64,000 nt of DNA, from the sequence record NC_070958.1. One strand, 5' to 3'. Under the pieces are notes generated by a model. The model made no database searches. It was not told where the DNA came from and was given only the letters and a program-made list of their open reading frames with translations. Shown in pieces: positions 7,489 through 10,809 of the stretch. Every line of letters starts with the position of its first letter. Position 1 is the stretch's first letter. The position numbers and the translations under genes were made by a program.

Positions 7489-7520
7489 GCCTCTACTCTC
7501 CGGTTAGGGAGAGTAGAGGC
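7489..7520 (-). terminator. Intrinsic terminator closing the RNA island
   Basis: Minus strand GCCUCUACUCUC-loop-GAGAGUAGAGGC then UUUUAUU. Confidence 0.85.
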
Positions 7521-8385
7521 GATTACTGACGTGTACTACCTTCCCATTACTCACTCACTTCCCGATTATAGATCCGGCCAAAGACCTTATCGGGATCAAG
7601 AGAGTAATAGGCTGATAGCAAGTACGTGAGGGGTTCCAAACGGAAACCGTCACTTCTACCAACTTCCATGCAGAGCAAGCATGGCGGACCGTTCGACTTC
7701 GTTATTAAGGTGCTCTCTGAAGTATAGTCCCCTCAGCTACCCGCCGCGGCCTCAGCCGGGGGTTTTTGCTAAGGGCATCAGCCTTATATAACGTCGTCAC
7801 TGTACTGGCACTAACGAATAGAACCATCGGCGCACGGTTAGGGTACCTACGTGACTCGCGTCCGTTGGGACGGGAGATGGAACTTCCTTATAAAGGAAGA
7901 AAGGGTTTTGAACCCAGGATGCCCTGATCCATTGTAATAGACCATCGCTTCACTCCTTTCATTAGAACCTAGCATGCCTTTTCGGCCAAAATGGTTCATC
8001 AGAGTTACTGTATATGGGAACTGTTCCGTGGGTTCAAAAAGGTATCCCGGACAATGACTAAGTAACCACACTCCACCCCATCAGCGCAAGCTAATGTAAG
8101 GTACGTCACTATCCAGGGAATAGGGCCGAGAACACGCTGTCTTTTAGAAGGATCGCTTTTGAGTGGTAAGTTCACTCATCTACTGCCAACCGACTTCCCC
8201 GTAGGGCTTCGTCTTAACTAACGTGTCTCGGTGATTCGTACTAGTATCTATCTGGTATGTTTGACACCTTGGGTATCATGGCAAACAGCCTAGGATTAAC
8301 CTATGTACAAATATAGTTGAGAGTGTAAGTAAGAAACACGGTAACAGGAGGCGGAGAAACCGTATGAATACACTTACACCCTCAA
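7521..8385 (-). ncRNA. Candidate large structured ncRNA (~850 nt), family not identified
   Basis: No credible ORF; many helices including a 10-bp perfect long-range pair (7906-7915/8030-8039) and a UACG tetraloop; downstream of tRNAs, ends at terminator. Confidence 0.65.
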
Positions 8386-8387
8386 AG

Positions 8388-8465
8388 GGTGAGAACTCCT
8401 GGAATCGAACCAGGGCAATCCCGCGATGGGTTGTGCGGGCGACTTTCCTTTCGTCTTCAGTTCTC
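8388..8465 (-). ncRNA. tRNA-like element with aberrant anticodon arm (pseudo-tRNA)
   Basis: Acceptor GAGAACU/AGUUCUC, T-arm CCUGG-UUCGAUU-CCAGG, D-arm GAC-GAAAGGAAA-GUC, stem CCCGC/GCGGG with 10-nt loop ACAACCCAUC; ends ACC(C). Confidence 0.7.
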
Positions 8466-8467
8466 GT

Positions 8468-8731
8468 TTACAGTTCGATGTCGAAAGACATCACTTCTTG
8501 TTCTTCAGTCAACCTGGCGTTGAGATCGTCAAAGCCACCAACGTGTTCATCGTCCAGGAAGATCTGGGGAACTGTTGTGACTTGTCGACCACACAATTGA
8601 CTGAGTTGTGTTGTGTCGATTCCGGAAGACTTGATATCGACATATTCGAACGCGATACCTTTATCTTCGAGAAGCTCTTTTGCCTTTACACAGTAAGGGC
8701 AATTATCCTTTCCATAAACTTTGGCTTTCAT
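8468..8731 (-). CDS. grx: Glutaredoxin
   Basis: CPYC active site, TVPQIF, HVGGFDDL. Confidence 0.95.
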   Translation of the reverse strand: MKAKVYGKDNCPYCVKAKELLEDKGIAFEYVDIKSSGIDTTQLSQLCGRQVTTVPQIFLDDEHVGGFDDLNARLTEEQEVMSFDIEL

Positions 8732-8754
8732 GGTGTTTCTCTACGGACTTAAAA

Positions 8755-8830
8755 TGGCAGGCAAGCAAGGATTCGAACCTTGGACATCTGGTTTTGGAGA
8801 CCAGCGCTCTACCAACTGAGCTACTCACCT
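8755..8830 (-). tRNA. trnW: tRNA-Trp(CCA)
   Basis: AGGTGAGTAGCTCAGTTGGTAGAGCGCTGGTCTCCAAAACCAG...GTTCGAATC...GCCA; full cloverleaf with encoded CCA. Confidence 0.97.
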
Positions 8831-8850
8831 GTAATACGAATTCACATTAC

Positions 8851-8991
8851 TACACACTCGCCGTTCTTCCTAGTTTCCGTTCCGAACGTTCCACGGTTCA
8901 CCGTCACCATATACTTTATCCATTCGGACGCCATCTGTGGCTATCAAGTACTTAGGTCCATATTGGTTATGTCTGTTGACACCCGTGTGTA
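8851..8991 (-). ncRNA. Candidate structured RNA in the tRNA-Asp/tRNA-Trp spacer
   Basis: Closing helix UACACAC/GUGUGUA enclosing hairpins UGUC/GACA, GCCA/UGGC, ACGG/CCGU, CGUU/AACG. Confidence 0.45.
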
Positions 8992-9017
8992 AACCAGATT
9001 AATCTGGGGTGAAAATA

Positions 9018-9094
9018 TGGCAGGGATAACGGGGCTCGAACCCGCGACCTCCGGCGTGACAGGCCGGCACTCTAACCATCTGAGCTACATCCCT
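9018..9094 (-). tRNA. trnD: tRNA-Asp(GTC)
   Basis: AGGGATGTAGCTCAGATGGTTAGAGTGCCGGCCTGTCACGCCGG...GTTCGAGCC...GCCA. Confidence 0.97.
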
Positions 9095-9098
9095 AAAT

Positions 9099-9174
9099 TG
9101 GCGGTTCCTGCTGGACTTGAACCAGCGACATATGCATTAACAGTGCACCGTTCTACCTACTGAACTAAGGAACC
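9099..9174 (-). tRNA. trnN: tRNA-Asn(GTT)
   Basis: GGTTCCTTAGTTCAGTAGGTAGAACGGTGCACTGTTAATGCAT...GTTCAAGTC...GCCA. Confidence 0.97.
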
Positions 9175-9234
9175 TGAATATGGAGCCGACTAACGGAATC
9201 GAACCGATGACCTACTGATTACAAGTCAGTTGCT

Positions 9235-9333
9235 GGTGCCGGTCCTTCTACGTTGACCGCTCAAAAGAACGCTAGAGAAAAGGGCATCCCTTACTTCACT
9301 GCCAAGGCTACAACGCCAAACAGTATCCTGAAG
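9235..9333 (+). repeat. Exact 99-bp copy of terL 2011-2109
   Basis: ggtgccggtcc...cagtatcctgaag identical at both loci. Confidence 0.97.
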
Positions 9334-9441
9334 CCGCCAGTTTGCCGCCATGAAGGCGAGAATGATCTGAACGATAATACGTTCGATAAAAGCACGAGCC
9401 AAAGTCATAACTCTGTTTCCTTATGATGATAGAGGTAATCA
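9334..9441 (-). repeat. Exact 108-bp inverted copy of 10893-11000
   Basis: Reverse complement reads tgattacctctatcatcataaggaaacagagttatgactttgg...aaactggcgg. Confidence 0.97.
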
Positions 9442-9508
9442 AAGTCAGTTGCTCTACCTACTGAGCTAAGTCGGCGATGTCGTACCAAGGGTACGACGTA
9501 CTGGACTT

Positions 9509-9709
9509 TCAACCAGCATTAAAAGAACCTAAGATCAAACCACGGACATTACCTATGGTTCGACCAATCAAAGTGACTTCGATGCGATCAATAGGCAAAT
9601 AACCATTCGCCAGATCAATCGCTTCCGATAAGTCGACAGCCGCGATAACCACTGCGTCGTACTCGTCATAGTCCCAATCATCGGTTCTTTCAACTTTATA
9701 GATGTTCAT
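9509..9709 (-). CDS. Small phage protein (66 aa), paralog of 34849-35112
   Basis: GGAG upstream of ATG 9709; MNIYKVERTDDWDYDEYDAVVIAA...GLILGSFNAG. Confidence 0.8.
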   Translation of the reverse strand: MNIYKVERTDDWDYDEYDAVVIAAVDLSEAIDLANGYLPIDRIEVTLIGRTIGNVRGLILGSFNAG

Positions 9710-9779
9710 ATCGACAGTCTCCGTTGTTAGCGATTTGGCTTTCCAACGTACTACCAGCAATATCGAACATCTTGCATAA

Positions 9780-9924
9780 CAATGAGTTTCCCAGAGTTTG
9801 ACATTTTCTATCCATCATGGTCCCCGAGACCGGATTTCGGGACGCGCCGGTGCTACTTCGATTCTAGACCGAAGTGTAATGGTGTTTTTTACGATTCGGG
9901 GGTTTCTGTCAAACCACTTCATTG
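9780..9924 (-). ncRNA. Structured RNA motif, copy B of a tandem pair
   Basis: CAAUGAAGUGG...CUCUGGGAAACUCAUUG; same helices and loops as copy A with compensatory changes. Confidence 0.8.
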
Positions 9925-9933
9925 TTTATTTAT

Positions 9934-10072
9934 CAATGAGTTTCCCAGGGTGTAGAGTATTTTATCCGCTGCGGGCAGGCCAGGTGGGTCTTCGGGACGC
10001 ACCCACAGTTGGCTCAAGAGAGCTGCCTTGTGTTTTGGCGACTGGCCTTTATTTCTCTACACTACTTCATTG
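9934..10072 (-). ncRNA. Structured RNA motif, copy A of a tandem pair
   Basis: CAAUGAAGUAG...CCCUGGGAAACUCAUUG; conserved loops AAAACAC and GCGUCCCGAA. Confidence 0.8.
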
Positions 10073-10074
10073 AA

Positions 10075-10350
10075 AGGTGTTAGCTGTTTCTCTCTTGGAC
10101 CCCAGCATCGTCACCAGGATAAAACCTTTGTGTGACAACACTCAATTAACACCTATATCATTGTGACACCTTCTCGGTGTGATACATAGTCGATCACCGC
10201 ATTGGTTAGATCCCTGATGGACGACTGGACGCTGCGTATAGCAGTGTTTGTCTCCTAGGTGGGTATCGCCAGCACCGTGTCGGCTATAGGATGTGATCAC
10301 ACGAGGAAACCAGAGGGATGTCCAACCCTTTTCAGTTACATGTGATCACG
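10075..10350 (-). ncRNA. Candidate structured RNA region immediately 5' of the tandem motif
   Basis: AGGUGUUA/UAACACCU, GUCAC/GUGAC, ACACC-GAGAA-GGUGU, CUGC/GCAG; two GUGAUCAC palindromes; no credible ORF. Confidence 0.5.
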
Positions 10351-10809
10351 AAAGCTGTTGTTAACAAAGTATAATAACTTGTTGTTACTAAATACTTTTC
10401 AATTGGCTCTCTTTGAAAGCTAATAGAAAAGAGGTCTTCACAAACCGTATGGAAGACCTTTGAAAAATGTAAAGGATTAACAATGAAAAATAAACCAACC
10501 ATACACGAAAGCCAACACCAATGACCTTCTATATAAACTCTCTTTGAAGAGCATATATAGAAAGGGGGTAGGAAGACTACCCCGCGGGTAAAAGCAATAA
10601 CCCAAGAACGTGCAGATATTGAAAGCGGGAGCTTTCTTGATAATGACTCTTGGGTGAATCAGTATTAAGAAAGCAAGGGATAAAGCTGCGCACAAAATCC
10701 CTTTGCTTGTATTACGTAGGAGTTTATTCAATGGCTTCGTTTTGACCACTGTCGCGTTCAGTAATCAAAAGGAAGCATTTTTGTACATATAATAACAGAC
10801 ACCCATAAC

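Follow-up and report, generated by a model that had tools for sequence, protein, structure and literature searches.

Conserved tRNA genes and structured noncoding elements in an island of the nucleus-forming Aeromonas phage D6

What is produced from a ~3.3-kb region of a phage genome that holds only two credible protein-coding genes? The question is raised by an island on the minus strand, from ~10,830 to 7,489, of the window analyzed here, a stretch of 64,000 nucleotides identical to positions 1-64000 of Aeromonas phage D6 (MN131137.2). Phage D6 belongs to the genus Ludhianavirus of the family Chimalliviridae, to which the ICTV has transferred the genus (PMC12451628).

Extent, coding content and synteny of the island

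On the minus strand, the island comprises a leader, a two-copy motif, four tRNA genes with a structured RNA between two of them, a tRNA-like element, a long RNA and a terminator (Table 1). The initial annotation had described a conserved, largely noncoding island of structured RNAs on the minus strand of a nucleus-forming phage, and synteny, the Rfam scan and covariation all agree with this description. Each of the noncoding elements that it named (a structured region, a tandem motif, a spacer, a tRNA-like element, a hairpin and a long RNA) is present on that strand. The limits it had set, 7489-10400 (~2.9 kb), hold at the 3' end but not at the 5' end, because structure extends to ~10,730, placing the start ~400 nt further upstream. 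The claim that only two small proteins are encoded was borne out: family support is restricted to a glutaredoxin, which passes the curated cut-off of PF00462 (61.3 versus 22.9 bits) and is also annotated in the islands of several relatives, and to a 66-aa protein with no assigned function, the gene start of which displays 83% nucleotide identity to phage AhC3_1.

Table 1. Features of the D6 island, from its head to its terminator (positions in the window).
Feature	Position	Strand	Evidence
Promoter-like palindrome at the island head	10810-10838		Repeat search; conserved block 10802-10844
Leader, run of conserved hairpins, three of them terminator-like	10380-10730	-	nhmmer, RNAalifold
Tandem motif, two units	9931-10020 and 9777-9866 (span 9777-10020)	-	Repeat and fold comparison
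Gene for 66-aa protein	9509-9709	-	phrog_5444, E = 2e-11
tRNA-Thr(UGU), split in the anticodon loop	9181-9475 (5' half 9475-9442, 3' half 9222-9181)	-	Joined halves equal the LAh10/AP1 gene
tRNA-Asn(GUU), CCA encoded	9099-9174	-	ARAGORN and Rfam, 72 bits
tRNA-Asp(GUC), CCA encoded	9018-9094	-	ARAGORN and Rfam, 66 bits
Inter-tRNA structured RNA, 187 nt, between tRNA-Asp and tRNA-Trp	8831-9017	-	nhmmer, RNAalifold
tRNA-Trp(CCA), CCA encoded	8755-8830	-	ARAGORN and Rfam, 70 bits
Glutaredoxin gene, 87 aa	8468-8731	-	Pfam PF00462, 1e-16; phrog_22
tRNA-like element	8387-8465	-	Homologues and covariation
Long hairpin opening the long RNA	8318-8384	-	MFE fold
Lineage-specific body of the long RNA	7851-8317	-	No relatives beyond Ludhianavirus
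Conserved 3' domain of the long RNA	7530-7850	-	Covariance model R1, alignment, folds
Intrinsic terminator, 13-bp stem, 8 G-C pairs, U tract	7489-7520	-	Terminator scan

Synteny across the Chimalliviridae, proposed initially as a check on the island, was found in all of the related loci fetched: an island of tRNA, glutaredoxin and long noncoding sequence lies upstream of the same virion gene (the homologue of D6_0004) in 16 of 16 phage loci and in several metagenome contigs, and a noncoding gap of 0.5-1.2 kb recurs at the equivalent position in every genus examined. A tRNA or tRNA-like element stands directly before the long noncoding stretch in D6, ZPAH34, AerS_266, AhC3_1, CF8, AVP1, ACP1, N1M2, and Yubaba. 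The long RNA of D6 likewise follows the tRNA/glutaredoxin cluster, ends in a terminator and precedes the D6_0004-type virion gene, with one extra gene (DUF4234) intercalated before the latter.

Leader, tRNA genes and small structured elements

The palindrome at the head of the island is located between the island and the divergent gene D6_0010 and may act as a promoter. Its 20-nt motif occurs 4 times in the window at ≤3 mismatches (0 expected by chance), with further copies at 32666 and 47817, and the block around it is kept in Aeromonas relatives. The adjoining leader is homologous to loci of Ferozepurvirus (nhmmer E = 4e-11), and RNAalifold yields 110 pairs, 20 of them with compensatory changes and many being G-U on the minus strand. 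Of its terminator-like hairpins, that at 10565-10583 was retrieved by the terminator scan, and those at ~10660-10697 and 10430-10462 were read from the sequence by eye. The single strong terminator of the initial annotation was recovered at the end of the island, but it is not the only such hairpin. The units of the tandem motif, which is restricted to Ludhianavirus, are spaced by 154-155 nt, and each consists of a hairpin with the loop GCGUCCCGAA followed by CUGGGAAACUCAUUG; the stems of the two copies differ in sequence, yet the pairing is kept in both.

A gene was taken as a tRNA gene if it forms a cloverleaf with a 7-nt anticodon loop and is recognized by ARAGORN and by Rfam RF00005. This applies to tRNA-Trp, tRNA-Asp, and tRNA-Asn as they stand, and to tRNA-Thr only when an insert of 219 nt (9441-9223) is disregarded; in the Rfam scan, the 3' part of the latter scores alone (30.3 bits). 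When joined, the halves give a 76-nt tRNA-Thr, which is uninterrupted in LAh10 and AP1. The insert is composed of an exact reverse complement of 10893-11000, an exact copy of 2011-2109 and an 11-nt duplication, and the sibling records D3 and D9 contain runs of N at this site. Because the tRNA is intact in LAh10, the insert is probably an assembly artefact. Thus, the four tRNA genes initially reported are valid for the lineage, whereas in the D6 record one of them is interrupted. The interrupted tRNA-Thr, together with two spurious ORFs, is flagged here as a likely error of the public record.

The inter-tRNA RNA folds into a 5' hairpin, a long-range helix closing a multi-branch core, and a 3' hairpin. 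Homologues are present in ZPAH34, AerS_266, and the Shewanella phage SXP01 (nhmmer 1.5e-15 to 3e-8), and 12 of the 44 pairs predicted by RNAalifold carry compensatory changes; scanning of 7000-11500 at E up to 5 retrieved no Rfam match for this RNA.

The tRNA-like element has a 5-bp anticodon-type stem together with an acceptor stem, a D arm, and a canonical T arm with the loop GGUUCGAWUCC, the latter three being conserved by covariation. In an alignment with its homologues (five distinct sequences from four lineages of Aeromonas phages), 96.7% of the cells pair and 8 of the 18 pairs are changed on both sides, values reached by none of 500 shuffles. We rejected its identification as a true tRNA: the anticodon-type loop measures 10 nt in D6 (7-11 nt in relatives), position 8 is a G instead of U8, ARAGORN makes no call, and the Rfam tRNA model finds nothing at E up to 5. 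Furthermore, it encodes no CCA, unlike all four true tRNAs. The copy in ZPAH34 scores 38 bits against RF00005. The element is reminiscent of the mascRNA of MALAT1, and the two may be comparable in that a cloverleaf combining an acceptor stem with a T arm borders a long noncoding RNA, one end of which tRNA enzymes would generate; however, the D6 element lies on the 5' side of the long RNA, belongs to a bacterial virus, and its cleavage is only predicted. Collectively, compensatory changes in other genera were found for the leader hairpins, the inter-tRNA RNA, the tRNA-like element, and the 3' core described below, bearing out the structural conservation in relatives on which the initial proposal depended.

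The long RNA and its relatives

The long RNA (~0.85 kb) opens with a predicted hairpin whose loop and 3' arm are pyrimidine-rich and contain CCUCC. By eye, a pyrimidine-rich start after the tRNA-like element is also apparent in ZPAH34 and AhC3_1. The body that follows (the first ~470 nt) has no nhmmer or blastn match in the relatives; like the tandem motif, it is confined to four Ludhianavirus genomes. Because these genomes are ~99% identical, both lie outside the reach of covariation, and their structures are predictions from thermodynamics and low divergence only (1.3% between D6 and LAh10 over 7851-8384). That the ~0.85-kb RNA is one functional unit is not shown by sequence comparison; its recognizable relatives cover the last ~300 nt only.

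Within the 3' domain, a core at 7660-7691 consists of a helix, a 4x3 internal loop and a hairpin flanked by AACNGUCCGC and GAAGUUG, which is the architecture of the long RNA in the OBP-like clade, and is followed downstream by CAGCC and a long hairpin. A covariance model of this core (R1), constructed with D6 left out, has a single match in the 64-kb window, at the expected place (7691-7660, minus strand, 21.1 bits, E = 8e-4); the match is partial, covering 31 of 70 model positions, and its 21 bits compare with 53-76 bits in the relatives. In the family alignment, 96.9% of positions are paired and 6 of the 10 pairs are changed on both sides, and the three-hairpin layout of the domain recurs in single-sequence folds from all lineages. 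The domain is followed by the predicted terminator, a G+C-rich hairpin with a U tract (TTTTATTATG). Members of the Chimalliviridae use their own polymerases for transcription.

The syntenic ~1-kb RNA of the OBP group is strongly structured, with 139 consensus pairs, 72 of them compensatory, and a consensus energy of -78.9; the reverse complement reaches -52.2, and alignments with shuffled columns reach -0.6. Its 5' domain of ~700 nt, defined from OBP, Kc263, N1M2, Yubaba, Survivor, pEt-SU, SXP01, and AH04, was not matched in D6 by a profile search, and its ten conserved motifs have no convincing counterpart there (two chance-like near-matches, none for most). The syntenic RNAs of OBP, SXP01, Kc263, N1M2, Yubaba, Survivor, AH04, and a metagenome contig contain a type I hammerhead in which the core is complete (CUGANGA, GAAA, a GUC cleavage triplet, and the A15.1-U16.1 pair) and invariant. 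Of its three stems, stem I is open and covaries. When eight relatives were scanned for the motif, each genome gave exactly one hammerhead, always at the homologous site. Rfam hammerhead models score only 17.6 bits in these phages, because stems II and III carry long insertions. By contrast, the motif is absent from both strands of the D6 window and from the other Aeromonas phages. Since D6 lacks the 5' domain and the hammerhead, membership in the same family holds for the 3' core only.

Large ornate RNAs are known to adjoin phage tRNAs. GOLLD (RF01998) and ROOL (RF03087) resemble the D6-type RNA in size (0.5-1.1 kb), high degree of structure, many covarying helices, and location beside phage tRNA genes, but they occur in other hosts and another phage family, and their covariance models do not match. 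Rfam 15 was searched with the whole window, at gathering thresholds, and again with 7000-11500, with matches up to E = 5 admitted; only tRNAs and chance-level matches emerged, and we therefore rejected GOLLD or ROOL as the identity of the island RNAs, in line with the initial annotation, which could assign none of them to either class. Neither model matched ZPAH34 or AhC3_1 (E up to 1) or Yubaba (E up to 10).

A candidate RNA operon and competing readings

We consider it rather probable that the island is a tRNA-punctuated noncoding-RNA operon, that is, a minus-strand transcription unit, or a tight cluster of units, with mainly RNA products. Transcription would start at a promoter near 10,830 and stop at the 7,489 terminator, with the four tRNAs and the tRNA-like element serving as processing punctuation. 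Host RNase P would cut at their 5' ends and host 3'-end tRNA enzymes at their 3' ends, freeing the tRNAs, the 187-nt RNA, two small mRNAs, and the ~0.85-kb RNA. The last of these would begin where the precursor is cut at the tRNA-like element and finish at the terminator. The tRNA-like element would be retained as a processing handle rather than a decoder, since its acceptor stem and T arm, which together make up a minimal substrate for RNase P, are kept, whereas its anticodon loop is oversized and U8 and CCA are missing. The long RNA would be modular, joining a Ludhianavirus-specific 5' body to a 3' domain common to the OBP-like clade of the Chimalliviridae; in the clade members from Pseudomonas and enterobacteria, the type I hammerhead would cleave immediately 5' of this domain. 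We infer co-transcription, processing by tRNA enzymes, stability of the products, and any trans-acting role in infection. A single island transcript is unproven because of the three terminator-like hairpins in the leader, at which transcription could stop ahead of the tRNAs. The island yielded no internal promoter, and a literature and data search found no transcript records for these phages.

Folding of the 901-nt stretch 7484-8384 is strongly strand-asymmetric (z = -7.7 on the minus versus -2.8 on the plus strand), and the conserved pairs of the 3' core, the inter-tRNA RNA, and the leader include many G-U pairs, which become A-C on the opposite strand. Both observations run counter to a reading, unlikely in our view, in which the noncoding stretches act mainly as DNA (as an array of promoters and terminators, as an origin of replication, or as a site for packaging close to the terminase module) and the RNA structure reflects DNA palindromes or bidirectional terminators. 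The leader is consistent with this reading, being AT-rich (39% G+C over 10400-10900), folding about equally on each strand (z ~ -4 to -6.7) and containing a perfect palindrome that recurs elsewhere in the genome; in addition, the record begins a few kb from the island, and in relatives a terminase gene is found nearby. However, 7,484-9,020 has ordinary G+C content and direct repeats limited to short two- or three-copy matches, and neither a cloverleaf with a T loop nor the hammerhead core of the relatives has a role as DNA.

The noncoding parts of the island differ from LAh10 at 0.95% of sites, versus 4.5% at third codon positions of the neighboring genes (Fisher p = 7e-14), an ~5-fold slower change that, at the level of sequence comparison, shows purifying selection. 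This speaks against the still less probable idea that the noncoding DNA besides the tRNAs is neutral spacer or else coding sequence, either decaying or unannotated, and that the long RNA is functionless read-through, as do the covariation of several elements and the gap kept at one place in all genera examined. The idea draws on the lack of wider relatives of the 5' body and the tandem motif, on unremarkable local folding (z of -1.2 to -2.6 in 200-nt windows in the middle of the long RNA, no better than coding DNA) and on small ORFs annotated here in GenBank, but neither the four other small ORFs, nor the ORF within the tRNA insert, nor any ORF in the body matches a Pfam or PHROG family.

Equally improbable is a cis-acting attenuator or antiterminator, formed by the 3' domain and the terminator, that gates read-through into the downstream virion genes: in most relatives the domain directly precedes a strong terminator, with the conserved virion gene within ~60 nt on that strand, and Yubaba displays a weak likeness to the L10 leader, an attenuator (26 bits, E = 0.058), but this match is far under the 44-bit threshold, Survivor, pEt-SU, and SXP01 retain the terminator and the virion gene with the 3' domain absent, the DUF4234 gene in D6 and an HNH endonuclease gene in pAEv1810 separate the domain from the virion gene, and a conserved GATCTTTTGTAA-like motif past the terminator, noted by eye, could be the virion gene's own promoter.

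The operon reading would place the island in a tradition known since T4, namely, phage tRNA clusters with other stable RNAs. In T4, RNase P acts with other host RNases to process the cluster, which also yields two extra stable RNAs (species 1 and 2; RNA C and D), and the D6 island, as read here, is similar in that tRNAs are interleaved with small structured RNAs freed by host tRNA enzymes. It differs in being much larger, in adding the ~0.85-kb RNA, the tRNA-like element, and two protein genes, and in residing in a genome of the Chimalliviridae. To our knowledge, the function of the T4-type extra RNAs and of the large ornate phage RNAs is not understood. Nucleus-forming jumbo phages, which separate transcription from translation, are a current focus of phage biology, and the island extends the theme of tRNAs with stable RNAs to this group. 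It provides targets backed by covariation: an RNA of ~180 nt common to three genera, a tRNA-like element that resembles a processing handle kept in place, a family of long RNAs sharing a conserved 3' core, and, in OBP-like phages, a type I hammerhead that had not been annotated before. These targets are absent from Rfam 15, and a literature search found no paper describing them. More tentatively, the long RNA and its 0.5-1.1-kb counterparts may constitute a new family of large, stable, trans-acting RNAs, matured by tRNA enzymes and, in some lineages, by the hammerhead, with a dedicated role in infection, and the 187-nt RNA and the tRNA-like element may represent undescribed classes. If so, examples of such a role for the long RNA would be scaffolding or the decoying of host factors that bind or target RNA, and its family would cover at least seven genera of nucleus-forming jumbo phages.

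Layout and constraint of the island

Positions 1-64000 of the Aeromonas phage D6 record MN131137.2 are 100% identical to the window, and the siblings LAh10, D3 and D9 share ~99% identity with D6 over the region. Ludhianavirus, the genus of D6, was placed in the Chimalliviridae by ICTV in 2025 (PMC12451628). When the layout was re-derived element by element along the minus strand, from ~10,830 to 7,489, the inventory of the initial annotation, in which tRNAs and two small protein genes are interspersed with structured RNAs, proved correct. Two ORFs annotated in GenBank are probably spurious: D6_0006 (7547-7669), because it overlaps the conserved RNA core and hairpins described below, and D6_0008 (9226-9408), because it lies wholly within the insert splitting the tRNA-Thr gene and opens with a copied start of D6_0010, the divergent gene beyond the island head.

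Table. Elements of the D6 island, in minus-strand order, and hammerhead sites in relatives' loci (L-numbers).
Element	Position	Strand	Remarks
Palindromic promoter-like motif	10810-10838		recurs at 32666-32685 and 47817-47836; chance expectation none
AT-rich leader, hairpins in series, 3 terminator-like	10380-10730	minus	sequence reading, terminator scan, consensus fold
Long hairpin	10290-10345	minus	sequence reading
~90-nt motif, two copies	9777-10020	minus	spacing 154-155 nt
66-aa protein gene	9509-9709	minus	phrog_5444
tRNA-Thr(UGU)	9181-9475	minus	split by insert
tRNA-Asn	9099-9174	minus	
tRNA-Asp	9018-9094	minus	
Spacer, 187 nt	8831-9017	minus	
tRNA-Trp	8755-8830	minus	
Glutaredoxin gene	8468-8731	minus	PF00462, 1e-16
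tRNA-like element	8387-8465	minus	
Hairpin, 67 nt	8318-8384	minus	
~790 nt without credible ORF	~7530-8317	minus	
Terminator, 13-bp	7489-7520	minus	
Type I hammerhead	L008:5591-5676, L009:5820-5902, L011:5557-5647, L012:5118-5202, L013:5522-5606, L017:5835-5921, L018:5502-5585, L027:5502-5586		

The noncoding parts of the island are under constraint. D6 and LAh10 differ there at 25 of 2,633 sites (0.95%), compared with 1.95% in the flanking genes overall and 4.5% at their third codon positions, where 78 of the 102 changes fall (noncoding versus third-position divergence, Fisher p = 7e-14). The minus strand of 7484-8384 (901 nt) folds at -332.8 kcal/mol (z = -7.7, versus -2.8 for the plus strand). 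In 200-nt windows, folding stands out only at the leader and at either end of the long RNA, whose middle (7900-8350) does not outperform coding DNA.

The 20-nt motif at the island head, AGATAATATCTAYCTGAAAA, is centred on a perfect palindrome and recurs in the window far above chance, making it a candidate operator or promoter of the phage. In pAEv1810, the virion gene is preceded by a similar string. Another putative promoter motif, TATRTGTAMMAAA, was rejected for lack of enrichment (10 matches against 10 expected), and a sigma-70 promoter scan, irrelevant to phage polymerases, did not exceed shuffled sequences.

The interrupted tRNA-Thr gene

The anticodon loop of the D6 tRNA-Thr gene contains a 219-nt insert (9223-9441) flanked by an 11-nt duplication. 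Nucleotides 1-108 of the insert match the reverse complement of 10893-11000 exactly, and the following 99 nt duplicate 2011-2109 without a mismatch. LAh10 and AP1 carry an intact 76-nt tRNA-Thr, and D3 and D9, which originate from the same laboratory as D6, have different, unrelated inserts with runs of ten Ns at exactly the D6 insertion site. Given the exact copies of nearby DNA, the intact genes and the N runs, the interruption is quite probably an assembly or scaffolding artefact, and faulty assembly of the three records, all from one laboratory, likely accounts for D6, D3 and D9 alike. A group I intron and a mobile element were both rejected, since the insert consists of two exact copies of phage DNA from nearby and the siblings contain N runs.

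AP1 (MT713136.1), filed as a T4-like member of the Straboviridae, encodes at 5001-5705 a Thr-Asn-Asp-spacer-Trp block with 98.9% identity to D6, including a spacer with 100% identity, and carries a second D6-like piece (228978-229076) matching window 2011-2109. This D6-like DNA was either exchanged recently between unrelated Aeromonas phages or introduced by chimeric assembly. D3 and D9 also have a hairpin-rich insertion of 102 nt at the junction of tRNA-Asp and tRNA-Asn (window 9098/9099), which could represent another small RNA or a small mobile element; D6 and LAh10 are without it.

Synteny and covariation of the island RNAs

Homologues of D6_0004, the virion gene near the island, with 60-73% identity were found in OBP, SXP01, Kc263, N1M2, Yubaba, Survivor, AH04, pEt-SU, PS1, pAEv1810, AVP1, ACP1, CF8, ZPAH34, AerS_266 and AhC3_1. 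At every one of these loci, an island comprising a few tRNAs and 0.5-1.2 kb that is unannotated or has only a very small ORF lies 5' of the D6_0004-type gene and is closed by a terminator just ahead of it; metagenome contigs display a matching arrangement of tRNAs and noncoding DNA, so that synteny across relatives is borne out. Most of the loci include a glutaredoxin gene, and in nine lineages among those examined a tRNA or tRNA-like element lies directly 5' of the long noncoding stretch. HNH endonuclease genes are inserted in the islands of PS1 (L014:3924-4427, between tRNA-Arg and tRNA-Met) and pAEv1810 (L010:4887-5939, between the 3' RNA domain and the virion gene); thus, the island tolerates or attracts mobile insertions.

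The proposal that the island consists mostly of structured RNAs gained support from compensatory changes in four D6 elements. The leader aligns with Ferozepurvirus loci (nhmmer, E = 4e-11), yielding a consensus of 110 pairs, 20 of them compensatory, with many G-U pairs on the minus strand. For the 187-nt spacer, nhmmer found homologues (1.5e-15 to 3e-8) in ZPAH34, AerS_266 and Shewanella phage SXP01; its consensus fold has 44 pairs (12 compensatory), and 6 of the 8 pairs of its long-range closing helix covary. Homologues of the tRNA-like element occur in ZPAH34, AerS_266, AhC3_1 and pAEv1810/AVP1. Covariation in its acceptor, anticodon-type and T stems shows in 96.7% pairing and two-sided changes at 8 of 18 pairs; none of 500 shuffles was as good and slid control alignments were 28-52% paired. 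Its copies have a loop of 7-11 nt, never U at position 8 and no encoded CCA; CCA is encoded by all 4 true D6 tRNAs. Having kept what RNase P needs and lost what decoding needs, the element is suggestive of a retained processing handle. A tmRNA was rejected, as ARAGORN found none and the acceptor-stem halves are adjacent.

The fourth element is the 3' domain of the long RNA, which in all lineages runs in the order AACNGUCCGC, covarying hairpin, GAAGUUG, second hairpin, CAGCC and long third hairpin. For the core of this domain, RNAalifold on 11 sequences without D6 gave 9 pairs, 6 compensatory and 0 broken. A covariance model built from the same sequences had a single match on either strand of the window, at 7691-7660 (21.1 bits, E = 8e-4); it scored 53-76 bits in relatives and had no match in the more distant clade (38-43%). 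By eye, the apical loop of the third hairpin (window ~7575-7590), whose tip was compared at loci L016, L007, L006 and L019, carries a GGCC palindrome in D6, CF8, AhC3_1, ZPAH34 and AerS_266, and UUGCAA in N1M2 and Yubaba; such self-complementary loops could mediate RNA-RNA kissing. CCUCC-type pyrimidine runs are exposed by hairpins at window 8318-8384 and L006:5086-5165, and also occur in the leader hairpin loop of L021, L015, L010 and L014 (A9 columns 36-51), their resemblance to anti-Shine-Dalgarno sequences hinting at pairing with ribosome-binding sites.

The 5' body (7851-8317) and the tandem motif had no relatives beyond Ludhianavirus in blastn and nhmmer searches. The closest diverged relatives of the long RNA (~65-70%), sought with blastn 'distant' against phages, nhmmer against all fetched islands, and IMG/VR and metagenome scans, all lack the D6-specific body. 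The protein-guided IMG/VR scan returned only OBP itself, the metagenome scan 24 loci, none near Ludhianavirus, and the IMG/VR DNA-pattern scan at least 120 matches, mostly chance, with one real new clade member (L081).

The noncoding stretches of OBP, Kc263, N1M2, Yubaba, AH04, Survivor, pEt-SU, SXP01 and metagenome contig L027 are homologous over up to ~1 kb, with a consensus of 139 pairs, 72 compensatory, and an energy of -78.9 kcal/mol (reverse complement, -52.2; column-shuffled alignments, -0.6). Within this RNA lies a type I hammerhead of textbook form (CUGANGA, stem II, GAAA, stem III from an A-U pair, GUC cleavage site), with an invariant core and a stem I covarying at 4 of 4 pairs. Rfam recognised the core alone (17.6 bits), below its thresholds because of long insertions in stems II and III. 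Unannotated hammerheads are carried by OBP, SXP01, Kc263, N1M2, Yubaba, Survivor, AH04 and one metagenome contig. The hammerhead lies immediately 5' of the 3' domain or, where that domain is missing (Survivor, pEt-SU and SXP01), immediately before the terminator. Profile and motif scans found neither the OBP-group 5' domain nor the hammerhead in D6 and other Aeromonas phages. A CUGAUGA...GAAA string near 8000 in D6 was rejected as a hammerhead, since it forms neither stem II nor stem III and the motif scan was silent.

Interpretation of the island as a proposed RNA-producing operon

Precedents exist in phage tRNA clusters that also encode stable RNAs of other kinds and in large structured RNAs beside phage tRNAs. 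The RNA families described here are new: Rfam 15 at gathering and permissive thresholds returned only tRNAs in D6 and 13 relatives, and weak matches to YrlA, the L10 leader and miRNAs were rejected as chance-level. Literature searches on these RNAs turned up neither transcript data nor a publication.

Of the noncoding stretches, the AT-rich leader alone is a plausible candidate for a role at the DNA level. An attenuator acting in cis on the virion genes, for which the terminator-proximal 3' domain might be taken, is weakened by lineages without the domain and by others with genes inserted after it. Both the constraint and the covariation contradict a reading as decayed genes or neutral spacer.

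Comparative evidence is solid for the four D6 elements and the OBP-group RNA; covariation so far reaches only part of the D6 island. The long RNA looks modular, joining a conserved 3' domain to a 5' body that is replaceable or evolves fast; in one branch of the clade a ribozyme lies between the two. Collectively, the evidence fits an RNA-producing operon, whose co-transcription, processing, stability and function we infer, and in which the tRNAs and the tRNA-like element would be cleavage points for the tRNA-processing enzymes of the host.
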